From contig JBITNC010000002.1 in assembly GCA_050084985.1 (NCBI GenBank), positions 62,001 through 126,000 on the forward strand: a DNA stretch of 64,000 nucleotides, read 5' to 3'. The DNA is from Nageia nagi (lineage: Eukaryota > Plantae > Pinophyta). The translations under genes and the position numbers were made by a program. The notes under the pieces are model-generated. The model worked only from the letters and a program-made list of their open reading frames with translations, had not been told where the DNA came from and ran no database searches. Positions 1 to 21,583 of the stretch are shown here, one piece after another (the first letter of the stretch is position 1; the number at the start of each line of letters is the position of its first letter).

Positions 1-17
1 TTTTCGCTATCTTGACA

Positions 18-1706
18 ATGGCCCACAATAATCAACGGATCGCCTCACGAATTGGGTCCTCGAACCCTCTCTCCCATGGCGATCACCAACAATGCACTCC
101 AAGCAAACGGTTGAGGGCAGAGACCGGTGAACCAGTTCCTGTGGCTGCGCCTCTTGCTATCTATGATAACAACACCCAACGAGGCAAGTTCTTTCCTGCC
201 CATGGCCCTTCATCCTTACCTGCTGACTTGGAGCGCACCCTACACCTTTTGAATGAGCGATTGAGCAAGATTGAAGGAGCCACGCGTATCATGGATGAGG
301 CCACTGATAATAGGTTCTGTAATGTGAGCGAACGATTGGAGCGGATTGATGAACGTTGTATGGATCGATTCGAGTTGCTATCCGTCCAGTTGCAACATGT
401 CATCCGTGCTCTCCCCTCCACATCGAGTGCGCCACCTCCACAAAATGATACCTCTGCTCTTCAACCTGGCACTTGCTCACAACCACAACCTGCCAACGCC
501 CCTCAACCTCCTCCGTCTACCACGCAACCGCACAGGCCACAAGAACCTCGCATTCATCGCGAGCCACAAGAACCCTGCTCCCCCGATCGTGATGTTGATG
601 GAAATGTGGAAATGGCGGATGGCATTGGAAATACTGAACCTCCATCGCGTGTTGGAAATGTGGATGATTCTCATAATGCTAGAAACTCTGAAACTCCATC
701 GCACGTTGAGGTATTCCCTTCACCAATCGCTGTTTTGATCAATGCCTCCTTTGATGAATACAAGCGACGCTGCTTGCAGGCTGAGCGCTCGCACAACTAC
801 GTTCTCAAGCTGAAGAAGCATAAAGAGGATGGCACTTTACCAAAGTGTTTAATGATTAAAGCCCCTAAAGTCACCATCAATGATGATGAAGGAAATGCAG
901 TCTTCACCACTTGCCTGGAGTCTGCGCAACGTACAGCGAACATGGAATTCCTAAAAGGCATGATCACAGGAATGGAGAAAGCAGCCTCCAATCATAAACT
1001 AGCGATCATTGCCGTTACAAATTCCTTCAAAACAACATTGAGGGATGCCATCTCTGTTGTGGAAAATGCTAACGTGATAGAGTCTCACTCCATTCCTTCG
1101 ACGGGATGGTTTGAAGCTGCAGTAGCTTCTTATGGAAATAAATGCACTCAATGGATGCTGCAACATGTCCTTAAGAAAAGTGCCCAAGAGAGTGCTGCTG
1201 CTGCTCGTCAAGAAGCCCATGATACGGCCCAAGAGGAGGCTGATCGGATGCCCACCGAAGCCTCAGTTGCTCAACTGATCAACAAGAATTTTCAATCCTT
1301 GCAACATTCCATCCAGCAAGAATTGAAGGAGATCAAAGCTTTCGTTGGTTTCAAACCTTCTGCTCAACAGCCTGCAAAGAAAAAGAAGGCCAATAAAGTA
1401 AAAAACACCCAAGCTCTGCCAAAAAACGGGAATGGATCCGGGGACCTTCCCCGGAATACCACTTCAACTGTCTCTGGACAGTTGCCATCAAAGCCAAAGT
1501 ATAAATCCCGAAAGAAGCAGATGCCTGCCCAATCTGCTGGGCAAAGTGGTGGATCCAACGTAAACATTTCTGCCCCCCAGAAAGCAGCAACCCAACAAAC
1601 CAACACATCCGGTGGCAAGAGGAAACGAAGGCGCAACAGGAAGAAGAAGAGCGGCCAAAACTTGCAGAATACCAACAAGTCTGCAAACGCCAACGTTTCC
1701 GGATAA
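18..1706 (+). CDS. PLE ORF1 protein (predicted coiled-coil segments, Pro-rich linker, basic NLS-like C-terminus)
   Basis: Open frame from ATG at 18 (MAHNN); KKKKANK and KRKRRRNRKKK tracts; homologous to decayed ORF1 of element B (GSSNP, GTLPK..IKAP..TIND.E, LIN). Confidence 0.8.
   Translation: MAHNNQRIASRIGSSNPLSHGDHQQCTPSKRLRAETGEPVPVAAPLAIYDNNTQRGKFFPAHGPSSLPADLERTLHLLNERLSKIEGATRIMDEATDNRFCNVSERLERIDERCMDRFELLSVQLQHVIRALPSTSSAPPPQNDTSALQPGTCSQPQPANAPQPPPSTTQPHRPQEPRIHREPQEPCSPDRDVDGNVEMADGIGNTEPPSRVGNVDDSHNARNSETPSHVEVFPSPIAVLINASFDEYKRRCLQAERSHNYVLKLKKHKEDGTLPKCLMIKAPKVTINDDEGNAVFTTCLESAQRTANMEFLKGMITGMEKAASNHKLAIIAVTNSFKTTLRDAISVVENANVIESHSIPSTGWFEAAVASYGNKCTQWMLQHVLKKSAQESAAAARQEAHDTAQEEADRMPTEASVAQLINKNFQSLQHSIQQELKEIKAFVGFKPSAQQPAKKKKANKVKNTQALPKNGNGSGDLPRNTTSTVSGQLPSKPKYKSRKKQMPAQSAGQSGGSNVNISAPQKAATQQTNTSGGKRKRRRNRKKKSGQNLQNTNKSANANVSG
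1421..1455 (+). promoter_or_regulatory. -1 programmed ribosomal frameshift signal
   Basis: A_AAA_AAC heptamer 1421-1427 in ORF1 codon phase (CCA AAA AAC), then hairpin TCCGGGGA-CCT-TCCCCGGA 1437-1455; the -1 frame is the RT frame; conserved in element B. Confidence 0.85.
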
Positions 1707-3625
1707 ATCTATGGGGCGCGGTGGTGGATCCAAAACAGTTTGCCCTCATCATTTTCTCAAGAAAATTACCTTCTGATATTGACCTTCGGATTACTAATTT
1801 TGTAATCCATAATCTGTCAAGTAGAAGGCTCAGTTATGAGGATAAAAAATTGCTTGGTTTGGGAATCAAATTCATCCCACGTCCACCACCTATGACTGAA
1901 GATCTAATGCATGTTGAATTTCGGGCTTTTATTCGAAAGCTCAGACTTCGTGCATACTTTGGACCTGATCCAGTTTTATCTCCACAACCTGATGCCAGGC
2001 CTGATCTTCAACCTTTCTTTGGCATTTTTCCCTTCAAGATTCCTAAGTCTAATTGGAATCCCATAGAGGTGCATCATGAATTGGAGGCTATCATACGGGA
2101 AAGCGAAATTGAGTTCAAGGAGCGCATCTCGCACTGTGATTTCACCAAGCTTCCTCCCCTCCCAAGGAGATTTCTCCGAAGTCTGAAGCTTCTTCGCAAG
2201 GATCGCAGCATCATCATAAAACCAGCTGATAAAAATCTGGGCCTTTATGTCATGGATAAATCCTGGTATGTCAATGAAGGGCTTAGGCAACTCTCTAATG
2301 CTGCTGTTTATCTCAAGGTTTTGGAGGTACCTTGGCGCCTGATCTGGAATAAGCTCAACCATTTCATTGGCCTATCAGAATTACTGAAGCCCATCAGGAG
2401 CTTTCTGCTCAAGAACTTGGCTTCCAAGGGACGCCCATGCGCTTTCTTCTTGCTGCCAAAGATTCACAAGCCCCTCCTTGTGGGTAGACCAATTTGTTCT
2501 TACTCGGGATACATTCTTGAACCAACCTCCAGATTGTTGCATTCTCTTTTGCTGCCTGTCCTCATGAAATAAGAAACGCACCTGAAGGACTCTGTCTCCC
2601 TCTTACGTGATCTTTCCTCCATGAGGCTTCCTACGGACTGTTGGCTCTTCACATTTGATGTCGAATCTCTTTATCCAAGTATTCCAACTGATGCTGGACT
2701 ACACGCCCTCCGTAGTACACTAGCAGCTTTCCTTGCCGATAATAATCTCCACGTCTCCCTCCTGGATATCATCATAGGACTGGCAGAATTAGTTTTGACA
2801 GAACACTATCTTGAATTCGATGGGGGAATTTATCGGCAAATCCGTGGTACAGCGATGGGGTCCAACTTCGCCGTGGTTTATGCTTGCTTATTCCTGTGCG
2901 AGCTTGAAAGACATGTGTTTCAACATATTAACCTGGCGAATCTGCTGTATTTCAAAAGATATGTAGATGATGCGTTTGGGATATGGGTGGGCTCCAAAGA
3001 CTCTTTGCAAGATTTTTTTGAACGTTACCAGATTGTCTTCCCAGAGATCAATATCACGCCTTGTGTGTCTCAGCTCTCTGTTGACATTCTTGATATAACA
3101 TTCTTCAAAGGTGAAAGTTTTGCTTCCTCTGGCATCCTGTCCACGAAGTTGTTTCAAAAACCTCTGAATGCGTATCAATATATCCCTTTCATTTCCTGGC
3201 ATCCTCTTCATCAGAAGAAAGCATTTGTTGTCAACGAGCTACGAAGGTATCTGCTGAGAGAATCACATTCAAGTGGTTTCATGGAGCTCAAGAAAAATTT
3301 CTTTCTTAGATTGAGGGCCAGAGGATACCTAAGGGGATTTCTGCTTCGTTGTTTTAGCAAAGTTACTTGGAGAGATAAACAAGAGCTTCTTTCTCGCCTT
3401 CATACAATTCGAGGAAGAAAACGGACCCCCCTGGTTTTCAAGCTCGACTTCAGCACTTCAGCGAAGGACTTAGACTTGGGGGTTTTCCTAAACCCTAAAC
3501 TCCATAGGCGTTGCCAAGAAGTTCCGGCTCTTACTTGCATCCCTCCTCCTATAATTTGCTGGCGAAATCCAAGAAAGCTTGGATCATTTCTGATACGAAG
3601 CAGATTTCATAGTTCAAATACTTAA
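1427..3625 (+). pseudogene. PLE ORF2: putative Zn-finger plus Penelope-type reverse transcriptase, two premature TAA stops (1502, 2570)
   Basis: Motifs IKPADKNLG, LPKIHK, GRPI, FDVESLYPSI, GTAMGS, RYVDD, LDITF; both TAAs align to Gln CAA codons in element B. Confidence 0.9.
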
Positions 3626-4067
3626 ATATTTAAATATTTAATTTTAATCATAGATTAAATACTTAAATATTTAATTTTAATCATTTTTCAATTTTTTTAA
3701 AAATTGATTTTTAAAATTGATTTTTTTTAAAATTGATTTTTGATTATTAATATTAATGATTTTTAAATGATTATGTTAATCATTTTTAAATGATTTTATT
3801 AATCATTTTTAAATGATTTCATTAATCATTTTTAATCATTTTTATTACTAAATATTTAAATATTTAAATATTTTAATATTTATGGAAGAAATTTCACATG
3901 GATGAAGTGGAAAGTAAAAGGTGTTTTCTCACTTCGTCCTCACTTGAGAATAGGAGCTGAATGGTTTTCCTCATGTTGTCTTCTTGTGCAACTAAAAAAC
4001 CAACAAATCTCTCCTTTTCTCCTATTTATTTGACATAATTTCATTGTAAAACCATTCCAAAGTGCAA

Positions 4068-4109
4068 GTGCAACTGATGAGGCTTAATGAGCCGAAACTA
4101 GTTTTGCAT
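4068..4109 (+). ncRNA. Minimal type I hammerhead ribozyme (element A 3' UTR)
   Basis: GTGCAA-CTGATGA-GGCT taatg AGCC-GAAA-CTAG-TT-TTGCAT: intact core, stems I and II, palindromic stem III, GUU cleavage triplet. Confidence 0.85.
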
Positions 4110-4227
4110 GCAACCTTTGTAAGTTTTTGTAATTTTCCATTAATGAAAATTGCAAATTATTTTTCTTTGATTTTTGTCAATCTTTCAATTCTGATGTTGA
4201 ATTATTGAAAGCAGCCAGTCATCTGGT

Positions 4228-4395
4228 AAATTTTTTATATAGTCTTAAATTTTTTATATAGTCAAAAAATTTTTATATAGTCTTAAAATTTTTTATATAG
4301 TCTTAAATTTTTTATATAGTCTTAAATTTTTTATATAGTCTTAAAATTTTTTATATAGTCTTAAATTTTTTATATAGTCTTAAATTTTTTATATA
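4228..4395 (+). repeat. ~21-bp tandem repeat (AATTTTTTATATAGTCTTA[A]), ~8 copies, at 3' end of element A
   Basis: Direct reading. Confidence 0.9.
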
Positions 4396-4800
4396 ACCTA
4401 AACCTAAACCCTAAACCCTAAATAACCCTAAACCCTAAACCCTAAAACCCTAAAACCCTAACCTAAACCCTAAACCCTAAACCCTAAACCCTAAAACCCT
4501 AAACCCTAAACCCTAAACCCTAAACCCTAAACCCTAAACCACCTTAAAACCCTAAACCCTAAACCCTAAACCTTAAACCCTAAACCCTAAACCCTAAACC
4601 CTAAACCTAAAACCCTAAACCCTAAACCTCTAAAACCCTAAACCCTAAACCCTAAACCCTAAACCCTAAACCCTAAACCCTAAAAACCCTAAAACCCTAA
4701 ACCCTAAACCCTAAAAACCCTAAACCCTAAACCCTAAACCCTAAACCCTAAACCCTAAATCCCTAAAACCCTAAAAACCCTAAAACCCTAAACCCTAAAC
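4396..4800 (+). repeat. Telomeric repeat tract (CCCTAAA)n
   Basis: Plant telomere motif, C-rich on + strand. Confidence 0.97.
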
Positions 4801-5458
4801 CCTGAACTACATCGGCTTTGCCAACAAGTTCCCGCTCTGCAATCCCTTCCACTCCCGATCGTGTGCTGGCGCAACCCAAGAAAATTGGGTAGTTTTTTGA
4901 TGAAGAGTAGATTTGATTAATTAATTAATTATTAATTAATTAATTAATTAATTATTAATAATAATAATTATTAATAATTAATAATTAATATTTTTTAATT
5001 ATTAATTATTAAATAATTATTTATTAAATATTTTTTATTAAATATTTTATTGTAATAGGTTGGCATACGATTAACGGTGCCAACACGATTTGTATTGAAT
5101 TGTCAACACGGTTTGTAATGAATTGGCATACGGTTATCGGTGCCAACACGGTTTGTAATGAGTTGGCATACGGTTATCGATGCCGACACGGTTTGTATTG
5201 TAATGTGTTGTGGGTTTCAAGAAACCATAACCCTAATTAGGGTTTTTGTGTTTCTTTTATATATGTAAGGTTATGTACGAGTTTTCTCATAGAGTGCAAC
5301 TGATGAGGAGTAAATCTCCGAAACCGGTCTTGCACAGCTCTTTGAGAAGTAATTATAGAATTTTCCTTGAATTTTTTCTATAATATTGTTCAATTTCCTT
5401 ACATCTTTTTTGGAAGCTGCCGAGTGTTTTTCTTAATTTTTTAAGTAACCCTAATTTT
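4792..5458 (+). repeat. 5' pseudo-LTR (5'-truncated tandem copy of element B 3' end)
   Basis: Near-identical to 9643-10265; starts inside RT codons LNPELHR. Confidence 0.92.
5294..5335 (+). ncRNA. Minimal type I hammerhead ribozyme (element B, 5' pLTR)
   Basis: GTGCAA-CTGATGA-GGAG taaat CTCC-GAAA-CCGG-TC-TTGCAC; GUC cleavage triplet; flanks extend stem I (TTCTCA..GAG / CTC..TGAGAA). Confidence 0.92.
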
Positions 5459-5470
5459 TCTGAATACACG

Positions 5471-7845
5471 ATGGCCACCAAAAATTCTATTTCCGCTCGA
5501 TAAGAAGGATCTTCGAATCCTTCGACATCAGGCGGCCCACAACAAATTGTTCCTGCAGAGAATAAAAGATAGAAGTTCGAGGATGGAGTTATTCGTAACA
5601 CTGAAGCGCGCTCGCACCAGTTAGCGCTCCAGGGATCTGCAGCAGATACCGAGCAAGCTATTATAATCGGTACTCCAAATGAACCAGGGCACTCCAAAGA
5701 TCACTCTTTTATCCAGATCCAGAAAAAGCTACAACGAGTTGATCATTCATTTCAATACATGGAGGAGAAAATGAAACGCATGGAGGAAGTGGCGGATAAA
5801 CGGTATGAGGAATATATAGATAGAATGGAAAGAATGGAGGAGAGAGCCACCGATCGTTACGAAACCATAACGGTTCAGATCCAACATGCACTCATGAGGT
5901 TGGGTGCGTTCGCACATACACAGGGTGCAGCTCATCATGACATGCAAAGCTCGCAGAATGAAGAAGGGTCAGGCGTGGACAGAGTGCCAGCCACTCCATT
6001 CACCAACCACGACGTTTTTGAAAATGTCACTCCTCCGGTTCACGTTTGCGTGCATGGTGCGGGTGCAGTCCACGATTACATGCAGGGTGCAGGTACAGTA
6101 GGTGCCAACATCAATGCATAGTCCCTCCATGACGTAGCGCAGCTCATGCAATCCCACGACGTAGCGCAGCCCATGCAATCATGCGTTCCTCCTTTTCAAA
6201 ATGTGCACGATGTTTTAAACGCGCACGATGTTCTTCAAAACACGTCCGTTGACCATGCACATGCTCCACGATTCCAAAACGCATCCGATCTTCCACAGCA
6301 GGCGACGAACGTGACTGGAGAACTACGTCAGGTATTGGATCCCACCCGTTATGCCACGCACGCGATACATACCACGTCTGCAGCTGCCCAGACCCAGCGT
6401 GCGACAGTCCAACGTCGCCATTTCATGCATGACAGGGAAGGGGTCGGGGATGGAGAACCAAATCGTGCGGAAGGAGATTCAAATCGTGCACGAGTGAATG
6501 AAGATCGAAATAATGGAGATAACGGAGGACGACCCCATCACCACCACAGAATATGGAAGAAGATGTGCCTCCAGTTAATGAAGAGCTGCCTTATCCCACA
6601 TCCATTGCTTCCCTCATTTCTGCATCGTTTAATGAATACAAGCGACTATTTTTGCAAGCAGAGAGGTCCGAGGATTATGTAAAATGACTGCGCCTGCACA
6701 AAGATAATGGAACTTTGCCAAAAATTCTGCAGATCAAGGCGCCCAGTCTCACCATCAACGACGGAGAAGCTCAAGCTGCCATGAGCTCCGCCTTTGATGA
6801 AGTGCAGAGAGAAGCTAATCAGTTATTTTTAAATGCATTTATATCTAGCATCGAGAAAGCTAATGCTAATCATCTCCAGTTAGTACCGGCTACCGTCTGA
6901 GCTTTCTCAACAACTCTGAATGAAGCCATTAATGCTGCACTGCAGATTCTGTATATCGGGACTTTTTCCATTCCATGGGAAGAATGGAAAATAGCAGCGC
7001 AAAAGAAGTTTGATGAGAAATGTAATAACTGGCTGCTAAGTCATTCACTCCGGAAAAGCGCCAGAGAATAAGCTGAGCTAACTCGGTAGAAAGCTCAGGA
7101 TGCTGCAATGAAGGAGGCTGATCAGTTGCCAACCGAACCCTCCATCAACAGACTCATCAATGAAAAAGTCAATCAAGCTGTTTCAGCTCTTCAGAAGGAG
7201 ATGCGCAAGCTTTTTGAACACAAGCCAAACGCTTCTAAAAAGAAGAGTCAACAACAGCAACAACTTTAGCAGAATATACCTCCTCCTAAGCAACAACAGA
7301 AAAAGAAGCAGCAACAGCAGCAGCAGCAGTCGAAACAGCAGAAGGTACCTTTGGTAAAAAGGCAACAATCGAGGTAGCAGCAGTATCAGCAACAGAAGCA
7401 ACAGCAACTGAGACAGCAGCAACAGCAGCAGAAGCAACAACAACCGAGACAACAGCAGAAGCAACAACAAGAGTCGAGGTCAAAAAACGGGTTTGCTTCC
7501 AGGGACCTTCCCCGGAATGCCATCTCCACTGCTTATGGACCATCGCAATTTGCGAAAAAGTCCAACCCTCGACTGATGAAAGAGCCTGTCCGATTTGCTG
7601 GACATCCTGGTGGCTCAAGGCACACCACCCGCTCTGTGATCCCCAGTTGGCAGAACCCTCATTCAAAAGGGTTAAGAGGAGAACCCTACAGCAACAGCAC
7701 AGGGTATCCTCGAGTTCACAGCAGCAGCAGCAGGCCACCTCGCAGGATGAATCCTCTGCAGAACTACAACTTCAGTAGACCCTCCAGCAACAGGTTCCCA
7801 GATCGCAGAGTCCATTGGCCGATGGAAGAACCCGCTTCAGGATAA
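5471..7845 (+). pseudogene. Decayed PLE ORF1 of element B with poly-Gln expansion
   Basis: ATG at 5471 (MATKNSISAR*EGSSNP); fragments align to element A ORF1; several C>T-type stops and frameshifts; CAG/CAA tract ~7245-7470. Confidence 0.8.
7482..7517 (+). promoter_or_regulatory. -1 programmed ribosomal frameshift signal (element B)
   Basis: A_AAA_AAC 7482-7488 in ORF1 phase (TCA AAA AAC); hairpin TTCC(A)GGGA-CCT-TCCC(C)GGAA 7497-7517. Confidence 0.85.
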
Positions 7846-9771
7846 ACTCCTGGGGGGTGGTGATCAAGCCTCGTCTTCTTGCTCTCGTGTACTTTTCTCA
7901 AAAAACGGCTGCGGAGATTGATAATAGGATTACCAATCCGGTAATCCATAATCTCTCCCACCGTTATTTAAGTTGCGATGACCTGAGGCTTCTAGGCTTG
8001 GGTGTCAAGTTTATTCCACGACCACCACCCATGACTGCTGACAAGATGCGTTTGGAGTTTAGAGCATTTGCTCGAAGACTTAGGTTGCGTGTCTTTTTTG
8101 GTGCCAAAGATGTAAACAGGGAAGCTGAAAATTGTCCAGAGCCAAGATATCAACATGAGCTTCTACCTTTCCGAGGAGTGTTTCCCTTCAGTATGCCGAA
8201 GCCATGGTGGAATCCGTAGGAAGTAAATATGGATCTTGAAGAAGTAATTCGGAAGGGAGAGAGCATGTTTGTGGATCTGCTTTCTCGGTGCTCTTTTGTT
8301 AAGCTTCCTCCACTCCCGCGCGGACTTATGAGAAGCCTAAAGCTTTTACGCAAAGATTCCAGCATCATCATCAAGCCGGCGGATAAGAATTTGGGCCTTG
8401 TATTTCTTGATCGATCCTGGTATGTTTCAGAAGGATTAAGGTAACTTTCTGATGAGAAGGTTTATTGCAGGATTGCAGAGGTTCCTTGGAGGTTGATATG
8501 GCACAAGCTGAAGTACTACATCGGGCAATCAAAACTCTTCAAAGGAATTGAGGGTTTCCTTTTGAAGAATCCAATTTCCTGTGCGCGTCCTTGCGCTTTC
8601 TTTTTGTTGCCCAAGATCCATAAACCCGTTCTGGTAGGAAGGCCCATTTGTTCTTACACGGGATATCTTCTTGAACCTGCATCCAGATTGTTGCATTCAC
8701 TTCTGCTGCCTGTATTACTTAGCCAAAAATTTCATCTCAAAGATTCTCTCACCTTGCTCAAAGAAGTCTCCGTGATTCAAGTCCCGCAGAGTTGCCTCCT
8801 CTTCACATTTGATGTTGAATCACTTTACCCAAGCATCCCCACACAGGTTGGACTTCAGGCACTCCGGATTATGCTTTCTACTTTCATGATACAGAACGGG
8901 CTCGACATGGGTTTGTTTGAGCTTATCATCAGTTTGGCAGAGTTAGTTCTCACTGAGCACTATCTGGAGTTTAATGGAGGAATATTTAAGCAAATTCGAG
9001 GGACAGCAATGGGAAAGTAACTTTGCCGTGGTTTATGCCTGCCTCTTCTTGTGCCATTTGGAGATGCAGGTTATCGAAAGCTTTGATGACTCCAATTTGC
9101 TATATTACAAGAGATATGTGGATGATGCTTTTGGTATCTGGACAGGTTCTGAAGAAACTTTGCAGGATTTCTTCAGACATTATCAGAGTATTCATGCGGA
9201 AATTAAGATTACCCCTGTTGTCTCCTATTCGGAAGTGGACATTCTGGATGTTACTTTCTTCAAAGGAAGGAATTTTGATATTACTGGAGTTCTTTCTACA
9301 AGGTGCTTTCAAAAACCATTGAATGCCTATCAGTACATTCCATACAGATCTTGGCATCCTCTGCATCAGAAGAGATCATTTGTTATCAATGAGTTACGAA
9401 GGTACCTACTCAGAGAGTCAGATCCTGCAGGCTTTTTGGAGCTGAAGAAGAATTTTTTCCGCAGACTTCGAGCAAGAGGTTATCCAACCAAGTTTCTACT
9501 CTATTGTTTCAGCAAGGTCACATTGGGAGATAAAACAGAGCTTCTCTCTCGTTTGCAGTCAACTACTCGAGGGGGAAAGAGGACCCCCCTTGTCTTCAAG
9601 CTTAACTTTAGCAAATCTGCTAAAGACTTGGACTTGGGGGCTACCCTAAACCCTGAACTACATCGGCTCTGCCAACAAGTTCCCGCTCTGCAATCCCTTC
9701 CACTCCCGATCGTGTGCTGGCGTAACCCAAGAAAATTGGGTAGTTTTTTGATGAAGAGTAGATTTGATTAA
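7488..9771 (+). pseudogene. PLE ORF2 (putative Zn-finger + RT) of element B, with stops and one frameshift
   Basis: IKPADKNLG, LPKIHK, FDVESLYPSI, GTAMG/SNFA (extra A near 9015), RYVDD; TAG/TAA at ~7776, ~8217, ~8442. Confidence 0.9.
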
Positions 9772-10099
9772 TTAATAATAATAATAATTATTAATAATTA
9801 ATAATTAATATTTTTTAATTATTAATTATTAAATAATTATTTATTAAATATTTTATTGTAATAGGTTGGCATACGATTAACGGTGCCAACACGATTTGTA
9901 TTGAATTGTCAACACGATTTGTAATGAATTGGCATACGGTTATCGGTGCCAACACGGTTTGTAATGAGTTGGCATACGGTTATCGGTGCCGACACGGTTT
10001 GTATTGTAATGTGTTGTGGGTTTCAAGAAACCATAACCCTAATTAGGGTTTTTGTGTTTCTTTTATATATGTAAGGTTATGTACGAGTTTTCTCATAGA

Positions 10100-10141
10100 G
10101 TGCAACTGATGAGGAGTAAATCTCCGAAACCGGTCTTGCAC
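10100..10141 (+). ncRNA. Minimal type I hammerhead ribozyme (element B, 3' pLTR)
   Basis: Identical core to 5294-5335. Confidence 0.92.
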
Positions 10142-10239
10142 AGCTTCTTTGAGAAGTAATTATAGAATTTTCCTTGAATTTTTTCTATAATATTGTTCAA
10201 TTTCCTTACATCTTTTTTGGAAGCTGCCGAGTGTTTTTC

Positions 10240-10883
10240 TTAATTTTTTAAGTAACCCTAATTTTTTAAGAAACCCTAATTTTTTAAGTAACCCTAATTT
10301 TTTAAGTAACCCTAATTTTTTAATTTTTTAAGTAACCCTAATTTTTTAAGTAACCCTAATTTTTTAAGTAACCCTAATTTTTTAATTTTTTAAGTAACCC
10401 TAATTTTTTAAGTAACCCTAATTTTTTAAGTAACCCTAATTTTTTAAGTAACATTAATTTTTTAAGTAACCCTAATTTTTTAATTTTTTAAGTAACCCTA
10501 ATTTTTTAAGTAACCCTAATTTTTTAAGTAACCCTAATTTTTTAATTTTTTAAGTAACCCTAATTTTTTAAGTAACCCTAATTTTTTAAGTAACCTTAAT
10601 TTTTTAAGTAACCCTAATTTTTTAAGTAACCCTAATTTTTTAAGTAACCCTAATTTTTTAATTTTTTAAGTAACCCTAATTTTTTAAGTAACCCTAATTT
10701 TTTAAGTAACCCTAATTTTTTAAGTAACATTAATTTTTTAAGTAACCCTAATTTTTTAAGTAACCCTAATTTTTTAAGTAACCCTAATTTTTTAAATAAT
10801 TTTTTAAGTAACCCTAATTTTTTAAGTAACATTAATTTTTTAAGTAACCCTAATTTTTTAAGTAACCCTAATTTTTTAAGTAA
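10240..10883 (+). repeat. 18-bp tandem repeat TTTTTTAAGTAACCCTAA (~35 copies) carrying the telomere core AACCCTAA
   Basis: Direct reading. Confidence 0.93.
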
Positions 10884-13800
10884 CTCAGCTCTAGTTAACC
10901 CTAACGCTCTTATCAAATGACGTGGCCATCCAACGGTTTGCTGTAGGCCTTGTGGGTTGATCCCACATGCGCTAGGCTATAATGCACCCTTGTCCATATA
11001 AGGCGTTCCCACCACCTAAAGCTTTGCCAATCGTGGTTTTGAGCTATTGGCACGTTTTCCCCTGCAAAAACTCCAGAGTTAAGCAGGATGATGCGGGAGC
11101 AATCCAGAGATGGGTGACCGGTCGGGATGTCCCGGTGTTGCACCTTCATCTTCAACTCCACGTACTAACAAATGCTTAGAAGTGGTGTCGAACCCTGCTC
11201 GGACACGTGCCCCAGGAAAGCTGCCCCATTTACTCAGCTCTAGTTAACCCTAATGCTCTTATCAAATGACATGGCCATCCAACGATTTGCTGTAGGCCTT
11301 GTGGGTTGATCCCACATGCGCTAGGCTATAATGCACCCTTGTCCATATAAGGCGTTCCCACCACCTAAAGCTTTGCCAATCGTGGTTTTGAGCTACTGGC
11401 ACGTTCTCCCCTGCAAAAACTCCAGAGTTAAGCAGGATGATGCGGGAGCAATCCAGAGATGGGTGACTGGCCGGGATGTCCCGGTGCTGCACCTTCATCT
11501 TCAACTCCACGTACTAACAAATGCTTAGAAGTGGTGTCGAACCCTGCTCGGACACGTGCCCCAGGAAAGCTGCCCCATTTACTCAGCTCTAGTTAACCCT
11601 AATGCTCTTATCAAATGACGTGGCCATCCAACGGTTTGCTGTAGGCCTTGTGGGTTGATCCCACATGCGCTAGGCTATAATGCACCCTTGTTCATATAAG
11701 GCGTTCCCACCACCTAAAGCTTTGCCAATCGTGGTTTTGAGCTACTGGCGCGTTCTCCCCTGCAAAAACTCCAGAGTTAAGCAGGATGATGCGGGAGCAA
11801 TCCAGAGATGGGTGACCGGCCAGGATGTCCCGGTGCTGCACCTTCATCTTCAACTCCACGTACTAACAAATGCTTAGAAGTGGTGTCGAACCCTGCTCGG
11901 ACATGTGCCCCAGGAAAGCTGCCCCATTTACTCAGCTCTAGTTAACCCTAATGCTCTTATCAAATGACGTGGCCATCCAACGGTTTGTTGTAGGCCTTGT
12001 GGGTTGATCCCACATGCGCTAGGCTATAATGCACCCTTGTCCATATAAGGCGTTCCCACCACCTAAAGCTTTGCCAATCGTGGTTTTGAGCTACTGGCGC
12101 GTTCTCCCCTGCAAAAACTCCAGAGTTAAGCAGGATGATGCGGGAGCAATCCAGAGATGGGTGACCGGCCGGGATGTCCCGGTGCTGCACCTTCATCTTC
12201 AACTCCACGTACTAACAAATGCTTAGAAGTGGTGTCGAACCCTGCTCGGACACGTGCCCCAGGAAAGCTGCCCCATTTACTCAGCTCTAGTTAACCCTAA
12301 TGCTCTTATCAAATGACGTGGCCATCCAACGGTTTGCTGTAGGCCTTGTGGGTTGATCCCACATGCGCTAGGCTATAATGCACCCTTGTCCATATAAGGC
12401 GTTCCCACCACCTAAAGCTTTGCCAATCGTGGTTTTGAGCTACTGGCGCGTTCTCCCCTGCAAAAACTCCAGAGTTAAGCAGGATGATGCGGGAGCAATC
12501 CAGAGATGGGTGACCGACCGGGATGTCCCGTGCTGCACCTTCATCTTCAACTCCACGTACTAACAAATGCTTAGAAGTGGTGTCGAACCCTGCTCGGACA
12601 CGTGCCCCAGGAAAGCTGCCCCATTTACTCAGCTCTAGTTAACCCTAATGCTCTTATCAAATGACGTGGCCATCCAACGGTTTGCTGTAGGCCTTGTGGG
12701 TTGATCCCACATGCGCTAGGCTATAATGCACCCTTGTCCATATAAGGCGTTCCCACCACCTAAAGCTTTGCCAATCGTGGTTTTGAGCTACTGGCCGTTC
12801 TCCCCTGCAAAAACTCCAGAGTTAAGCAGGATGATGCGGGAGCAATCCAGAGATGGGTGACCGGCCGGATGTCCCGGTGCTGCACCTTCATCTTCAACTC
12901 CACGTACTAACAAATGCTTAGAAGTGGTGTCGAACCCTGCTCGGAACACGTGCCCCAGGAAAGCTGCCCCATTTACTCAGCTCTAGTTAACCCTAATGCT
13001 CTTATCAAATGACGTGGCCATCCAACGGTTTGCTGTAGGCCTTGTGGGTTGATCCCACATGCGCTAGGCTATAATGCACCCTTGTCCATATAAGGCGTTC
13101 CCACCACCTAAAGCTTTGCCAATCGTGGTTTTGAGCTACTGGCGCGTTCTCCCCTGCAAAAACTCCAGAGTTAAGCAGGATGATGCGGGAGCAATCCAGA
13201 GATGGGTGACCGACCGGGATGTCCCGAGTGCTGCACCTTCATCTTCAACTCCACGTACTAACAAATGCTTAGAAGTGGTGTCGAACCCTGCTCGGACACG
13301 TGCCCCAGGAAAGCTGCCCCATTTACTCAGCTCTAGTTAACCCTAATGCTCTTATCAAATGACGTGGCCATCCAACGGTTTGCTGTAGGCCTTGTGGGTT
13401 GATCCACATGCGCTAGGCTATAATGCACCCTTGTCCATATAAGGCTTCCCACACCTAAAGCTTTGCCAATCGTGGTTTTGAGCTACTGGCACGTTCTCCC
13501 CTGCAAAAACTCCAGAGTTAAGCAGGATGATGCGGGAGCAATCCAGAGATGGGTGACGAGCGGATTCCCGGTGCTGCACCTTCATCTTCAACTCCACGTA
13601 CTAACAAATGCTTAGAAGTGGTGTCGAACCCTGCTCGGACACGTGCCCAGGAAAGCTGCCCCATTTACTCAGCTCTAGTTAACCCTAATGCTCTTATCAA
13701 ATGACGTGGCCATCCAACGGTTTGCTGTAGGCCTTGTGGGTTGATCCCACATGCGCTAGGCTATAATGCACCCTTGTCCATATAAGGCGTTCCCACCACC

Positions 13801-15414
13801 TAAAGCTTTGCCAATCGTGGTTTTGAGCTACTGGCGCGTTCTCCCCTGCAAAAACTCCAGAGTTAAGCAGGATGATGCGGGAGCAATCCAGAGATGGGTG
13901 ACCGGACGGGATGTCCCGATGCTGCACTGCGCCCTTCATCTTCAAAATCCACGTACTAACAAATGCTTAGAAGTGGTGTCGAACCCTCTCGGACACGTGC
14001 CCAGGAAAGCTGCCCCATTTACTCAGCTCTAGTTAACCCTAATGCTCTTATCAAATGACGTGGCCATCCAACGGTTTGCTGTAGGCCTTGTGGGTTGATC
14101 CCACATGCGCTAGGCTATAATGCACCCTTGTCCATATAAGGCGTTCCCACCACCTAAAGCTTTGCCAATCGTGGTTTTGAGCTACTGGCGCGTTCTCCCT
14201 GCAAAAACTCCAGAGTTAAGCAGGATGATGCGGGAGCAATCAGAGATGGGTGACCGACCGGGATGTCCGGTGCTGCACCTTCATCTTCAACTCCACGTAC
14301 TAACAAATGCTTAGAAGTGGTGTCGAACCCTGCTCGAACACGTGCCCCAGGAAAGCTGCCCCATTTACTCAGCTCTAGTTAACCCTAATGCTCTTATCAA
14401 ATGACGTGGCCATCCAACGGTTTGCTGTAGGCCTTGTGGGTTGATCCCACATGCGTAGGCTATAATGCACCCTTGTCCATATAAGGCGTTCCCACCACCT
14501 AAAGCTTTGCCAATCGTGGTTTTGAGCTATGGCACGTTCTCCCTGCAAAACTCAGAGTTAAGCAGGATGATGCGGGAGCAATCAGAGATGGGTGACCGCC
14601 GGGATGTCCCGTGCTGCACCTTCATCTTCAACTCCACGTACTAACAAATGCTTAGAAGTGGTGTCGAACCCTGCTCGGACAGTGCCCCAGGAAAGCTGCC
14701 CCATTTACTCAGCTCTAGTTAACCCTAATGCTCTTATCAAATGACGTGGCCATCCAACGGTTTGCTGTAGGCCTTGTGGGTTGATCCCACATGCGCTAGG
14801 CTATAATGCCCCTTGTCCATATAAGGCTTCCCACCACCTAAAGCTTTGCCATCGTGGTTTTGAGCTACTGGCACGTTCTCCCCTGCAAAAACTCCAGAGT
14901 TAAGCAGGATGATGCGGGAGCAATCCAGAGATGGGTGATCCGATCGGGATGTCCCGGTGCTGCACCTTCATCTTCAACTCCACGTACTAACAAATGCTTA
15001 GAAGTGGTGTCGAACCCTGCTCGGACACGTGCCCCTAGGAAAGCTGCCCCATTTACTCAGCTCTAGTTAACCCTAATGCTCTTATCAAATGACGTGGCCA
15101 TCCAACGGTTTGCTGTAGGCCTTGTGGGTTGATCCCACATGCGCTAGGCTATAATGCACCCTTGTCCATATAAGGCGTTCCCACCACCTAAAGCTTTGCC
15201 AATCGTGGTTTTGAGCTACTGGCACGTTCTCCCCTGCAAAAACTCAGAGTTAAGCAGGATGATGCGGGAGCAATCCAGAGATGGGTGATCGGCCGGGATG
15301 TCCGAGTGCTGCACCTTCATCTTCAACTCCACGTACTAACAAATGCTTAGAAGTGGTGTCGAACCCTGCTCGAACACGTGCCCCAGGAAAGCTGCCCCAT
15401 TTACTCAGCTCTAA

Positions 15415-15523
15415 TAAACCCTAAACCCTAACCTTAAACCCTAAAACCCTAAACCTAAAACCGTAAACCTTAAACCCTAAAACCTAACCCTAAAACCTAA
15501 ACCCTAAACCCCAAACCCTAAAC
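15415..15523 (+). repeat. Short degenerate (CCCTAAA)n tract inside satellite 1
   Basis: Direct reading. Confidence 0.93.
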
Positions 15524-16654
15524 TCCAGTACTAACAAATGCTTAGAAGTGGTGTCGAACCCTGCTCGGACATGTGCCCCAGGAAAGCTGCCCCATTTACT
15601 CAGCTCTAGTTAACCTAATGCTCTTATCAAATGACGTGGCCATCCAACGGTTTGCTGTAGGCCTTGTGGGTTGATCCCACATGCGCTAGGCTATAATGCA
15701 CCCTTGTCCATATAAGGCGTTCCCACCACCTAAAGCTTTGCCATTCGTGGTTTTGAGCTACTGGCACGTTCTCCCCCTGCAAAAACTCCAGAGTTAAGCA
15801 GGATGATGTGGGAGCAATCCAGAGATGGGTGACCGATCGGGATGTCCCGGTGCTGCACCTTCATCTTCAACTCCACGTACTAACAAATGCTTAGAAGTGG
15901 TGTCGAACCCTGCTCGGACACGTGCCCCAGGAAAGTTACCCCATTTACTCAGCTCTAGTTAACCCTAATGCTCTTATCAAATGACGTGGCCATCCAACGG
16001 TTTGCTGTAGGCCTTGTGGGTTGATCCCACATGCGTTAGGCTATAATGCACCCTTGTCCATATAAGGCGTTCCCACCACCTAAAGCTTTGCCAATCGTGG
16101 TTTTGAGCTACTGGCACGTTCTCCCCTGCAAAAACTCTAGAGTTAAGCAGGATGATGCGGGAGCAATCCAGAGATGGGTGATCGGTCGGGATGTCCCAGT
16201 GCTGCACCTTCATCTTCAACTCCACGTACTAACAAATGCTTAGAAGTGGTGTCGAACCGTGCTCGGACACGTGCCCCAGGAAAGCTACCCCATTTACTCA
16301 GCTCTAGTTAACCCTAATGCTTTATCAAATGACGTGGCCATCCAACGGTTTGCTGTAGGCCTTGTGGGTTGATCCCACATGCGCTAGGCTATAATGCACC
16401 CTTGTCCATATAAGGCGTTCCCACCACCTAAAGCTTTGCCAATCGTGGTTTTGAGCTACTGGCGCATTCTCCCTGCAAAAACTCCAGAGTTAAGCAGGAT
16501 GATGCGGGAGCAATCTAGAGATGGGTGACCGACCGGGATGTCCTGATGCTGCACCTTCATCTTCAACTCCACGTACTAACAAATGCTTAGAAGTGGTGTC
16601 GAACCCTGCTCGGACACGTGCCCCAAGAAAGCTGCCCCATTTACTCAGCTCTAA

Positions 16655-16804
16655 TAAACCCTAAACCCTAAACCTTAAACCCTAAAACCCTAAACCTTAA
16701 ACCCTAAAACCGTAAACCCTAAACCCTAAAACCCTAAACCCTAAACCCTAAAACCCTAAAACCTAAACCCTAAAACCCTAAACCCCAAACCCCAAACCCT
16801 AAAC
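16655..16804 (+). repeat. Short degenerate (CCCTAAA)n tract inside satellite 1
   Basis: Direct reading; same breakpoints as 15415-15523. Confidence 0.93.
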
Positions 16805-17599
16805 TCCACGTACTAACAAATGCTTAGAAGTGGTGTCGAACCCTGCTCGGACACGTGCCCCAGGAAAGCTGCCCCATTTACTCAGCTCTAGTTAACCCTA
16901 ATGCTCTTATCAAATGACGTGGCCATCCAACGGTTTGCTGTAGGCCTTGTGGGTTGATCCCACATGCGCTAGGCTATAATGCACCCTTGTCCATATAAGG
17001 CATTCCCACCACCTAAAGCTTTGCCAATCGTGGTTTTGAGCTACTGGCACGTTCTCCCTGCAAAAACTCCAAAGTTAAGCAGGATGATGTGGGAGCAATC
17101 CAGAGATGGGTGACCGACCGGGATGTCCCAGTGCTGCACCTTCATCTTCAACTCCACGTACTAACAAATGCTTAGAAGTGGTGTCGAACCCTGCTCGGAC
17201 ACGTGCCCCAGGAAAGTTACCCCATTTACTCAGCTCTAGTTAACCCTAATGCTCTTATCAAATGACGTGGCCATCCAACGGTTTGCTGTAGGCCTTGTGG
17301 GTTGATCCCACATGCGCTAGGCTATAATGCACCCTTGTCCATATAAGGCGTTCCCACCACCTAAAGCTTTGCCAATCGTGGTTTTGAGCTACTGGCACGT
17401 TCTCCCTTGCAAAAACTCCAGAGTTAAGCAGGATGATGCGGGAACAATCCAGAGATGGGTGACCGGTCAGGATGTCCTAGTGCTGCACCTTCATCTTCAA
17501 CTCCACGTACTAACAAATGCTTAGAAGTGGTGTCGAACCCTGCTCGGACACGTGCCCCAGGGAAGCTGCCCCATTTACTCAGCTCTAGTAAACCCTAAA

Positions 17600-20500
17600 C
17601 CCTACGATGGCTCATATCCTTACCTCGAGATGCATGCCAGATCTCCTCCAAAGTGACTGAGCTCTCGGACATATTCCTTGGTAAGCATGCTTGCTCGTCT
17701 CATACTGCTCACCTAGAAAAGATCATTCAAATAAACCCTAAACCATTCAAATACTATGAGGTACGCTGTGAGACTTGAGCAATAATCCCACATGCACAAC
17801 CTGGCTAGCGCCTATGGGATATATAATGCACAATATACACCTAAAGCTTTGCCAATTGGGGTGTAAGAGTTGTAAGGGTGTAAATCCCGAAAATAGTGCT
17901 AAGACGGACGTCCGAACACTATTATTCCCCCCATATTAACAAATGCTTAGAAGTGTTGCGTGCAAAAACATTCCCATGTGGCCCCATTTCCTACCTCGGT
18001 AAGCGTGCCCAGCCATAGAGCCTGCTCACCTTATGCCTCGAAATGCTGCCCCTTCCTAGCCCCCTCGATATTCGTGCCTCTGCAATAGCAAGCCCACCTC
18101 AAATTTCTGCCAAAGACTAAGCCACCATAGGTGCCTTACTACCAAAAATGGTAGATTGTCTTAGTGGAACCCCTCTCACCTCGATATGCATGACAATGCC
18201 CTTACTTGTGCAAGCCTCGAGTTGCATGTGCCACCATACTGTGAGAGCCTTAGCTGCCTACGATGGCTCATATCCTTACCTCGAGATGCATGCCAGACCT
18301 CCTCCAAAGTGACTGAGCTCTCGGACATATTCCTCGGTAAGCGTGCTTGCTCATCTCATACTGCTCACCTAGAAAAGATCATTCAAAGAAACCCTAAACC
18401 ATTCAAATACTATGAGGTACGCTGTGAGACTTGAGCAATAATCCCACATGCACAACCTGGCTAGCGCCTATGGGATATATAATGCACAATATACACCTAA
18501 AGCTTTGCCAATTGGGGTGTAAGAGTTGTAAGGGTGTAAATCCCGAAAATAGTGCTAAGACGGACGTCCGAACACTATTATTCCCCCCATATTAACAAAT
18601 GCTTAGAAGTGTTGCGTGCAAAAACATTCCCATGTGGCCCCATTTCCTACCTCGGTAAGCGTGCCCAGCCACAGAGCCTGCTCACCCTATGCCTTGAAAT
18701 GCGTGCCCCTTACCTAGCCCCCTCGATATTCGTGCCTCTGCAATAGCAAGCCCACCTCAAATTTCATGCCAAAGACTAAGCCACCCACAGGTGCCTTACT
18801 ACCAAAAATGGTAGATTATCTTAGTGGAACCCCTCTCACCTCGATATGCATGACAATGCCCTTACCAGTGTAAGCCTCGAGTTGCATGCCACCATACTGT
18901 GAGAGCCTTAGCTGCCTACGATGGCTCATATCCTTACCTCGAGATGCATGCCAGACCTCCTCCAAAGTGACTGAGCTCTCGGACATATTCCTCGGTAAGC
19001 GTGCTTGCTCGTCTCATACTGCTCACCTAGAAAAGATCATTCAAATAAACCCTAAACCATTCAAATACTATGAGGTACGCTGTGAGACTTGAGCAATAAT
19101 CCCACATGCACAACCTGGCTAGCGCCTATGGGATATATAATGCACAATATACACCTAAAGCTTTGCCAATTGGGGTGTAAGAGTTGTAAGGGTGTAAATC
19201 CCGAAAATAGTGCTAAGACGGACGTCCGAACACTATTATTCCCCCCATATTAACAAATGCTTAGAAGTGTTGCATGCAAAAACATTCCCATGTGGCCCCA
19301 TTTCCTACCTCGGTAAGCATGCCCAGCCACAGAGCCTGCTCACCCTATGCCTCAAAATGCGTGCCCCTTACCTAGCCCCCTCGATATTCGTGCCTCTGTA
19401 ATAGCAAGCCCACCTCAAATTTCATGCCAAAGACTAAGCCACCCATAGGTGCCTTACTACCAAAAATGGTAGATTATCTTAGTGGAACCCCTCTCACCTC
19501 GATATGCATGACAATGCCCTTACCAGTGTAAGCCTCGAGTTGTGTGCCACCATACTGTGAGAGCCTTAGCTGCCTACGATGGCTCATATCCTTACCTCGA
19601 GATGCATGCCAGACCTCCTCCAAAGTGACTGAGCTCTCGAACATATTCCTCGGTAAGCATGCTTGCTCGTCTAATACTGCTCACCTAGAAAAGATCATTC
19701 AAATAAACCCTAAACCATTCAAATACTATGAGGTACGCTGTGAGACTTGAGCAATAATCCCACATGCACAACCTGGCTAGCGCCTATGGGATATATAATG
19801 CACAATATACACCTAAAGCTTTGCCAATTGGGGTGTAAGAGTTGTAAGGGTGTAAATCCCCAAAAATAGTGCTAAGACGGACGTCCGAACACTATTATTC
19901 CCCCCATATTAACAAATGCTTAGAAGTGTTGCGTGCAAAAACATTCCCATGTGGCCCCATTTCCTACCTTGGTAAGCATGCCCAACCACAGAGCCTGCTC
20001 ACCCTATGCCTTGAAATGCATGCCCCTTGCCTAGCCCCCTCGATATTCGTGCCTCTACAATAGCAAGCCCACCTCAAATTTCGTGCCAAAGACTAAGCCA
20101 CCCACAGGTGCCTTACTACCAAAAATGGTAGATTATCTTAGTGGAACCCCTCTCACCTCGATATGCATGATAATGCCCTTACCAGTGCAAGCCTTGAGTT
20201 GCATGCCACCATACTGTGAGAGCCTTAGCTGCCTACGATGGCTCATATCCTTACCTCGAGATGCATGCCAGACCTCCTCCAAAGTGACTGAGCTCTCGGA
20301 CATATTCCTCGGTAAGCGTGCTTACTCGTCTCATACTGCTCACCTAGAAAAGATCATTCAAAAATACCCTAAACCATTCAAATACTATGAGGTACGCTGT
20401 GAGACTTGAGCAATAATCCCACATGCACAACCTGGCTAGCGCCTATGGGATATATAATGCACAATAACACCTAAAGCTTTGCCAATTGGGTGTAAGAGTT

Positions 20501-21030
20501 GTAAGGGTGTAAATCCCGAAAATAGTGCTAAGACGGACGTCCGAACACTATTATTCCCCCATATTGACAAATGCTTAGAAGTGTTGCATGCAAAAACATT
20601 CCCATGTGGCCCCATTTCCTACCTCGGTAAGCGTGCCCAGCCATAGAGCCTGCTCACCCTATGCCTCGAAATGCATGCCCCTTACCTAGCCCCCTCGATA
20701 TTCGTGCCTCTGCAATAGCAAGCCCACCTCAAATTTCATGCCAAAGACTAAGCCACCCACAGGTGCCTTACTACCAAAAATGGTAGATTATCTTAGTGGA
20801 ACCCTTCTCACCTCGATATGCGTGACAATGCCCTTACCAGTGTAAGCCTCGAGTTGCGTGCCACCATACTGTGAGAGCCTTAGCTGCCTACGATGGCTCA
20901 TATCCTTACCTCGAGATGCATGCCAGACCTCCTCCAAAGTGATTGAGCTCTCGGACATATTCCTCGGTAAGCCTGCTTGCTCGTCTCATACTGCTCACCT
21001 AGAAAAGATCATTCAAATAAACCCTAAACC
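17600..21030 (+). repeat. Subtelomeric satellite 2, ~658-bp unit, ~5 copies
   Basis: Equivalent ORF starts at 18552, 19210 and 19869 give the period; shares blocks with satellite 1. Confidence 0.95.
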
Positions 21031-21583
21031 CTAAACCCTAAACCCTAAACCCTAAACCCTAAAACCCTAAACCCTAAACCCTAAAACCCTAAACCCTAAA
21101 CCCTAAACCCTAAACCCTAAACCCTAAAACCTAAACCCTAAACCCTAAACCCTAAACCCTAAAAACCCTGAACCCTGAACCCTTGAACCCTGAACCCTGA
21201 ACCTTGAACCCTGAACCCTGAACCCTCAACCCTTAACCCTCAACCCTCAACCCTTAACCCTCAACCCTCAACCCTCAACCCTAAACCCTAAACCCTAAAC
21301 CCTAAACCCTAAAAAAAAAACCCTAAAAAACCCTAAAAAAACCCTAAACCCTAAACCCTAAACCCTAAACCCTAAAACCCTAAACCCTAAACCCTAAACC
21401 CTAAACCCTAAACCCTAAACCCTAAAAACCCTAAACCCTAAACCCTAAACCCTAAACCCTAAAACCCTAAAAACCCAAAACCCAAAACCCTAAACCCTAA
21501 AACCCTAAACCCTAAACCCTAAACCCTAAACCCTAAAACCCTAAACCCTAAACCCTAAACCCTAAACCTTAAACCCTAAACCT
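21019..21583 (+). repeat. Telomeric tract (CCCTAAA)n with CCCTGAA/CCCTCAA variant block
   Basis: Direct reading. Confidence 0.95.

Follow-up and report, generated by a model that had tools for sequence, protein, structure and literature searches.

We analysed a 64-kb window of the Nageia nagi genome assembly (contig JBITNC010000002.1, positions 62,001 to 126,000, forward strand; all positions below are those of the window) and searched its six-frame translations. The first 24.8 kb of the window form a repeat domain, which opens with a block of Penelope-like elements (PLEs, 1-10884). Two elements, here called A and B, lie in this block head-to-tail, both on the plus strand, which is the C-rich telomere strand, and a tract of (CCCTAAA)n stands between them. 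A tblastn search with the reverse transcriptase (RT) of A as query located RT sequence at three places of the window and nowhere else: in A, in B and in a short fragment of B (4795-4914). A and B share one layout, in which a first open reading frame (ORF1) is followed by the slippery heptamer A_AAA_AAC, an ORF2 with a Cys/His motif and the RT, a hammerhead motif and a terminal array of 18-19-nt units. We consider this block to be probably the relic of a subtelomeric array that grew by successive terminal additions of endonuclease (EN)-less, Coprina-like PLEs in alternation with telomerase.

A and B are 69% identical in RT DNA, 66.5% in RT protein and 42% in the ORF1 core (over 231 aa), and owing to this divergence they represent two families. 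The full copy of B, including its terminal array, spans 5448-10884. It is preceded by a 5'-truncated partial copy (pseudo-long terminal repeat, pseudo-LTR; 4808-5447) that matches 9643-10266 at 92.5% identity. The coordinates of all features are collected in Table 1. The original prediction of two divergent two-ORF PLEs in one orientation, with the sense strand equal to the C-rich strand and telomere repeats between them, is borne out by the shared plus strand, by the RT divergence and by a separating tract of 411 bp.

Absence of an endonuclease

It had also been predicted that the elements carry no GIY-YIG endonuclease at either end, and our searches agree with this. Pfam gave no match of any kind at E<=1 in ORF1 or in either RT half, and no GIY-YIG. 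In addition, the EN tails of seven homologues with the PF01541 tag served to build a PLE-specific EN profile, which picks out 34 EN-containing (EN+) proteins from 328 fetched ones. When this profile was run with filters off on the six-frame pieces of the whole window, the best match had E=1.1 and no GIY-YIG was found.

The ends of the proteins tell the same. The RTs of A and B end 5-8 residues past the linker motif CWRNPRKLGSFL..SRF, and in a C-terminal alignment A, B and their homologues from Cryptomeria, Selaginella and metagenomes all end 5-12 residues past it. The motif aligns with the linker AYRRNKNL.DLLVRAKL of EN+ PLEs, whose proteins go on for a further 130-170 residues as GIY-YIG.

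Coding and RNA features shared by A and B

In both elements the RT lies in the -1 frame relative to ORF1. The heptamer A_AAA_AAC stands in frame at 1421 in A and at 7482 in B with conserved flanks (1421-1454 and 7482-7515), and a GC hairpin follows downstream in both; the hairpin of A has a z-score of -2.7. Ahead of the RT, the -1 frame encodes the Cys/His peptide GPSPE.H..CLWT...ACPICW..WW, which is conserved in A and B, and the TAA at 1502 in A reads CAA in B. From this arrangement, ORF2 would be expressed by -1 ribosomal frameshifting at the heptamer. In A, the Cys/His motif at the N-terminus of ORF2 is followed by a PLE-type RT with a DKN motif and a thumb, and the frame stops just past the linker motif.

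In ORF1 of A, a coiled-coil region at the N-terminus precedes a conserved core that is all-helical, and the tail is basic; the AlphaFold model predicts four long helices (pLDDT 77.6). ORF1 is homologous to the N-terminal part of the Cryptomeria protein P0125 (36% identity over 302 aa, E 1e-47) and also to Ginkgo P0110. No Pfam family was assigned to ORF1, a search of 5.8 billion proteins returned no match and the ESM Atlas no usable one. Compared with the PDB, the model gave generic coiled-coil matches only and no specific fold match. We infer that ORF1 encodes a Gag-like or chaperone-like protein. In Ginkgo, ORF1-like sequence is fused to the RT in the single gene models Gb_40217 (1305 aa) and Gb_11119.

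An AT-rich 3' untranslated region (3' UTR) follows the RT of A. The hammerhead core CTGATGAG..CGAAAC occurs three times in the window, always on the plus strand, while 0.01 occurrences would be expected. The cores of the two B copies, at 5300 and 10106, are identical. Helices I and II are present in the predicted folds, and helix II shows compensatory changes between A and B (GGCU/AGCC versus GGAG/CUCC). The A motif matches Rfam Hammerhead_HH9 with 19.9 bits and an E-value of 0.005 in a 101-nt search, which is below the gathering score, and an Rfam search at E<=1 over 26 kb missed the hammerheads. Judged from core and folds, these motifs may act as self-cleaving ribozymes. About 60 nt upstream of each B hammerhead there is a palindromic, telomere-like 16-mer, AACCCTAATTAGGGTT (5228-5243 and 10034-10049), which has no counterpart in A. 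The terminal array of A occupies a position homologous to that of the 18-nt units of B.

Phylogenetic placement

The RTs of A and B carry the hallmarks of PLEs (ADKN, FDVESLY, RGTAMG, YVDD and the thumb). At E<=1e-3, 15,096 representatives match, and 101 and 174 homologues are tagged with the PLE-associated families PF28514/PF26215. Closest in sequence are proteins from uncharacterised gene models: those of Cryptomeria japonica (57-61%) and Ginkgo biloba, of Selaginella moellendorffii (about 45%) and of Closterium.

Two RT trees were calculated, one with 103 rows under LG+G4 and a quick tree of 51 rows under the mixture model LG+C20. In both, A and B are sisters (support 99-100) placed among the Cryptomeria sequences (92-95), with Ginkgo next (95-98). 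Selaginella LOC112343723 stands at the base of a clade with 99% SH-aLRT support, Closterium falls outside it, and all EN+ rows lie across a 100% branch from the A/B clade. The N-terminal motif divides the rows in a similar manner: 74 of 79 EN-less rows have DKN, and DKG is found in all 24 EN+ rows. Motifs A and B of the RT stand 63 aa apart in our elements, versus 58-65 aa in canonical EN+ PLEs, so that an IFD is absent, and direct reading of the ORF2 sequence revealed no C-x-C motif. The lack of an IFD, the DKN motif and the tree position together exclude the Chlamys/PLE-X and the EN+ clades.

Membership of the Coprina clade would fit these data, as judged by proxy from the DKN motif and the grouping with Selaginella. 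Known Coprina members comprise Cc1, Pc1/2, Pt1, Sm1/Sm2 of S. moellendorffii and Coprina-1_Alen of Ascochyta lentis (PMC13159263; PMC8557442), and the published model of a Coprina element is drawn with the DKN motif (PMC13159263). Of the RT phylogeny that the original prediction had called for, our trees supply a part, namely the separation of the EN+ PLEs and the position of A and B in the Cryptomeria/Ginkgo clade. The predicted multi-family, EN-less lineage tied to seed plants is supported by the two families and by their nearest relatives in Cryptomeria and Ginkgo.

Relatives in metagenomes and in other plants

A scan of metagenome contigs yielded 80 related loci, in which telomere-type repeats were counted when at least three units were present. 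On the RT sense strand these repeats were of the C-strand type in 21 loci and of the G-strand type in none. The hammerhead core was found in sense orientation in 53 loci and in antisense in three. Where a locus held two copies, they were head-to-tail in all six cases, and in five of the six telomere repeats lay between the copies. Our EN profile found no GIY-YIG in any of the 80 loci. The recurrence of the chain pattern in these relatives indicates that it is a property of the family.

In a group of loci (L015-L023 and L033, on ERZ10344xx contigs) head-to-tail chains have short (CCCTAA)n stretches between the units and a (TC)n tract beside the hammerhead; the repeats there are of the TTAGGG type. 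In Cryptomeria japonica, three PLE gene models (P0001, P0005 and P0125) are located on one unplaced contig of 29,437 bp, which suggests a similar PLE chain in this species.

Junctions with telomere repeats and the terminal-addition model

All five telomere tracts up to position 24517 present the C-strand on the plus strand. This agreement in strand of A, B, the three hammerhead cores and the five tracts fits a model of terminal addition. The junctions point in the same direction. The terminal array of A directly adjoins the telomere tract that separates the elements, and at its other side this tract meets the truncated end of B at ACCCTAAACCCT (4797-4808), a telomere-like dodecamer that belongs to the RT gene and encodes T-L-N-P. 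Both RT genes hold nearly two telomere units at this place, CCTAAACCCTAAAC in A (3488-3501) and ACCCTAAACCCTGAAC in B (9644-9658), which encode a conserved L-N-P. Moreover, every unit of the B array holds AACCCTAA, an 8-nt match to the telomere repeat.

An A array sitting on a telomere tract and a truncated B capped by the same tract fit serial distal addition. So does the state of the two copies: A has two stops, whereas B has three stops and a frameshift in ORF2 and at least eight stops in ORF1, and this much stronger decay of B is expected if the distal element is the younger one. Orientation and junctions are thus those anticipated in the original prediction, namely attachment of the 3' end to the G-rich overhang followed by re-capping by telomerase.

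The mechanism that we propose is the one published for Athena and Coprina (PMC8557442; PMC13159263). The element RNA would give rise to the helical, coiled-coil and basic ORF1 protein and, by -1 frameshifting, to the ORF2 protein with its Cys/His motif and RT. The hammerhead in the terminal repeat would process the element RNA. Its 3' region, with the telomere-like core of the 18-19-nt unit, would pair with an exposed G-rich overhang or another free 3'-OH at a deprotected end, and the RT would then copy the RNA from the primer offered by the chromosome end, a step for which an endonuclease is not needed. The new end would often be 5'-truncated; telomerase would re-cap it with TTTAGGG, and the next element could attach. 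The outcome would be a head-to-tail chain with the sense strand equal to the C-rich strand and with the younger elements distal. Accordingly placed, the array would lie, or once have lain, at a true chromosome end.

Several observations weigh against this interpretation. Neither copy is intact, A and B both being pseudogenes. Every telomere tract is degenerate as well (80-91% matches), so nothing recent is seen. The window opens inside A, the 5' end of which is beyond the window start, and so does not show the true chromosome terminus. The 3' array of B does not run into a telomere tract: it meets the 349-bp satellite with 2 nt of microhomology. The simple model also leaves the inverted (TTTAGGG)n tract (24518-24818) unaccounted for. 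Finally, the satellite/telomere blocks further inward have identical junctions at 15521 and 16802, and by these junctions a part of the interleaving derives from duplication of a telomere-plus-satellite module and not from separate additions.

Some of these points would be accommodated if the PLEs had inserted into a pre-existing interstitial array of telomere-like and satellite repeats, using a free 3'-OH at breaks, nicks or stalled forks, with the pairing of their telomere-like 3' units to the G-strand fixing the orientation. The degeneracy of all tracts, the short microhomology at the satellite junction of B and the inverted tract at the inner edge are compatible with such a history, and some EN-less PLE lineages do have internal targets, such as PLE-X with 28S rDNA (PMC8557442). 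We think it unlikely here, since the 411-bp tract begins exactly at the truncation point of B, as telomerase healing of a free end would produce and as internal insertion leaves unexplained, and since decay increases from A to B, in keeping with serial distal addition.

Subtelomeric recombination, by unequal exchange or by break-induced replication between ends, might likewise have shuffled PLEs, satellites and telomere tracts. The two blocks with identical junctions, the palindromic telomere tract at 24196-24818 and the 92.5% identity between the upstream partial copy of B and the 3' end of its full copy could be read in this way. However, a partial tandem of this kind (pseudo-LTR) is a standard product of PLE insertion (PMC8557442), A and B are with 69% DNA identity no duplicates of each other, and the uniform strand bias together with the same chains in unrelated metagenomic relatives points to the insertion mechanism. 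As the main source of the interleaving, recombination therefore seems quite improbable to us.

Satellites, palindrome and proximal DNA

Proximal to the PLEs, a 349-bp and a 658-bp satellite of subtelomere-like character extend over about 10 kb and are interrupted by C-strand tracts (Table 1).

Table 1. Features of the repeat domain in window coordinates
Feature	Positions	Strand	Details
A ORF1	12-1706	+	564 codons, open within the window; 5' end probably left of the window
A ORF2/RT	1397-3625	+	-1 frame relative to ORF1; TAA stops at 1502-1504 and 2570-2572
A candidate -1 frameshift site	1421-1454	+	Slippery heptamer A_AAA_AAC at 1421-1427; 8-bp GC-rich hairpin 9 nt downstream
A minimal type I hammerhead motif	4068-4110	+	In the 3' UTR
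A terminal tandem array	4227-4395	+	(TAAATTTTTTATATAGTCT) x 8.8, 19-nt unit; directly adjoins the telomere tract
Telomere tract between A and B, (CCCTAAA)n	4397-4807	+ (C-strand)	411 bp, about 56 units, 88% matches
B 5'-truncated partial copy (pseudo-LTR)	4808-5447	+	Last ~36 RT codons, 3' UTR, hammerhead motif 5294-5336, one 18-nt unit
B full-length body	5448-10240	+	5' UTR, decayed ORF1, slippery site 7482, ORF2/RT, 3' UTR
B ORF1, decayed	5759 to ~7500	+	At least eight stops and a frameshift
B ORF2/RT	~7440 to 9771	+	Three stops (7776, 8217, 8442) and a frameshift near 9014
B hammerhead motif	10100-10142	+	In the 3' UTR
B terminal tandem array	10241-10884	+	(TAATTTTTTAAGTAACCC) x 39, 18-nt unit
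349-bp and 658-bp satellites	10883-21030	+	Subtelomere-like, proximal to the PLEs; interrupted by C-strand tracts
Telomere tract inside satellite region	15415-15523	+ (C-strand)	
Telomere tract inside satellite region	16655-16804	+ (C-strand)	
Telomere tract proximal to satellites	21018-21582	+ (C-strand)	
AT-rich unit of ~450 bp, three copies	21584-23902	+	Between two C-strand tracts
Telomere tract before palindrome centre	23897-24517	+ (C-strand)	
Inverted (TTTAGGG)n tract	24518-24818	+	Inner boundary of the repeat domain

The satellite blocks enter the two inner telomere tracts (15413-15523 and 16653-16804) at their own internal AACCCTAA motif, and after both tracts they resume at one and the same unit position, AACTCCA(C)GTACTAAC. 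We had considered that each satellite block was added in the manner of the PLEs and rejected this, the identical distal junctions indicating duplication. Each unit of the 349-bp satellite (10883-17598) matches 5S rRNA weakly but over the full length, with scores of 13.6-14.4 bits (E 5.6-9.1) that are far from reaching the gathering score. The units keep the GUUAAGC and GAUGGGUGACC motifs of 5S rRNA, and each unit also holds TTAACCCTAA; by its sequence this repeat may be a decayed 5S-derived satellite.

The AT-rich unit lies between two C-strand tracts. A hammerhead-like core, CTGAAGAGTCCTTAATGGACGAAA, is seen in its best copy at 22166, with no evident helix I, and the other two copies are degraded. 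All three copies finish with (AAAAATTTTAAACCA)n arrays, the last of which adjoins the telomere tract. The triple unit could be a non-autonomous, retrozyme-like passenger of the PLEs.

The repeat domain ends in a palindrome, (CCCTAAA)n(TTTAGGG)n, at 24196-24818 with its centre at 24517/24518. The order of strands is the reverse of that given by an end-to-end fusion or by a false join of two ends, and both origins of the palindrome were rejected for this reason. Rfam produced spurious sub-threshold matches to MIR9486 and mir-879 on the palindrome. Past the repeat domain the DNA is AT-rich and contains, at 28602-30924, 56349-56732 and 40107-40469, decayed copia/gypsy fragments (Pol_BBD, Retrotran_gag_2, Retrotrans_gag) and a minus-strand EF-hand exon.

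GC content is 39-52% across much of 1-20 kb and 25-33% past 26 kb. Such a step, together with a simple-repeat palindrome of the perfect type at 24517/24518, is what one might see if, by an assembly error or through a contaminant, a GC-richer block (1-24.8 kb) had been fused to the AT-rich DNA of the host. If two true ends had been falsely joined, however, the order would be (TTTAGGG)n(CCCTAAA)n, and the observed order is the reverse. Moreover, the telomere repeat is of the plant type, the nearest relatives of the PLEs are gymnosperm proteins and the proximal DNA carries copia/gypsy fragments of the plant type. An assembly artefact or contamination is therefore most unlikely.

Comparison with known telomere-associated elements

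According to PMC8557442, citing Gladyshev and Arkhipova (2007), Athena and Coprina are defined by head-to-tail chains of EN-less elements interleaved with telomere repeats. At the chromosome ends of fungi, Coprina elements are flanked on either side by telomere repeats (PMC13159263). Like these, A and B lack a GIY-YIG, carry the DKN motif, a thumb, a hammerhead motif in the terminal repeat and a terminal repeat formed by a partial tandem, and they lie between telomere repeats with the sense strand equal to the C-rich strand (PMC13159263; PMC8557442). Their RTs cluster with a Selaginella protein, and Coprina has the Selaginella members Sm1/Sm2. Coprina-1_Alen, too, has two ORFs with a coil domain. 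Coprina elements usually contain one ORF (PMC13159263), whereas in A and B two ORFs overlap and a -1 slippery site is conserved. Where Coprina has a short run of telomere-complement repeats at its 3' end, A and B have arrays of 18-19-nt units in 9 to 39 copies, and the host group is that of seed plants, with Cryptomeria and Ginkgo as nearest relatives.

In their architecture A and B also resemble Athena and the Terminons, for which PMC8557442 describes EN-less elements with two ORFs, a coiled-coil ORF1, a frameshift to the RT ORF and a hammerhead by C-rich repeats; there, too, the elements form head-to-tail chains, telomere repeats separate them and telomerase caps their 5'-truncated ends. In the same source Athena is described as rotifer-specific and basal among PLEs, whereas the RTs of A and B belong to a streptophyte clade; a giant multi-gene unit as in the Terminons is also absent. 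Given the streptophyte placement, membership of the Athena RT clade is unlikely, and the layout of two ORFs, coiled coil and frameshift is no more than a resemblance.

The EN+ PLEs, among them Dryad, Penelope/Poseidon, Neptune and Nematis, have in common with A and B a PLE-type RT, hammerheads, pseudo-LTRs and the linker motif at which our ORFs stop. They differ by a C-terminal GIY-YIG with a CCHH motif, by the DKG motif and by genome-wide insertion; A and B have neither GIY-YIG nor DKG. The Chlamys PLE-X of Selaginella and Chara are EN-less streptophyte PLEs with canonical hammerheads (PMC8557442). In contrast to A and B, which are flanked by telomere repeats, they possess a CxC motif as well as the IFD, a stretch of 20-40 extra residues that separates RT3(A) from RT4(B), and those of spike mosses target 28S rDNA. 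HeT-A, TART and TAHRE of Drosophila are functional analogues only. They also form head-to-tail terminal arrays with the 3' ends toward the centromere and with variable 5' truncation, but they are non-LTR elements of a host without telomerase. In our array telomerase repeats are interleaved, so the element supplements the telomere instead of replacing it.

Novelty and implications

Telomere-associated transposons are regarded as rare in plants. The original prediction had held the architecture to be undescribed, which is not the case: Athena and Coprina are already defined by it (PMC8557442; PMC13159263), and five of the six two-copy metagenomic relatives show it as well. The novelty lies in the host group, which from the sequence appears to be a gymnosperm-like seed plant. 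Two ORFs with a conserved slippery site and long 18-19-nt terminal arrays are minor variant features. The searchable literature, including searches that combined Coprina or Penelope-like with gymnosperm terms, describes no EN-less telomere-associated PLEs in seed plants. A 2025 review names only Selaginella for plant telomere-associated PLEs (PMC12477314), and the Cryptomeria and Cupressus genome papers mention 'Penelope' only as a line of the repeat table.

The notion of a 'retroelement-assisted chromosome-end system', with present activity and a benefit for the host, was not confirmed, as both copies are pseudogenes and all tracts are degenerate. We take A and B to be selfish elements of the telomere niche and see no sign of a host-serving maintenance system.

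The order in the RT trees, with Closterium, Selaginella, Ginkgo and then Cryptomeria together with this genome, resembles the phylogeny of the hosts. In a wider and rather doubtful scenario, A and B would belong to an ancient EN-less lineage of telomere PLEs that was inherited vertically through the streptophytes, with a charophyte, a lycophyte, Ginkgo, conifers and this genome among its carriers. In such a lineage, an RT of the Coprina type would be coupled to an ORF1 and a -1 frameshift that resemble those of Athena; the elements would still be active in gymnosperms and would build chromosome ends jointly with telomerase. Their telomerase-related RT would generate the 18-19-nt arrays by copying a short template segment over and over and would mobilise hammerhead-bearing non-autonomous units, such as that at 21.6-23.9 kb, onto chromosome ends.

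If vertical descent is true, EN-less PLEs would have resided at plant chromosome ends since before land plants and would have persisted in seed plants. Gymnosperms would then allow the coexistence of telomerase with a telomerase-related RT to be studied, and some of the 'Penelope' annotations in conifers would not be horizontally acquired Dryads. Arrays of this kind mark subtelomeres, and they may explain why chromosome ends are hard to finish in large gymnosperm assemblies.

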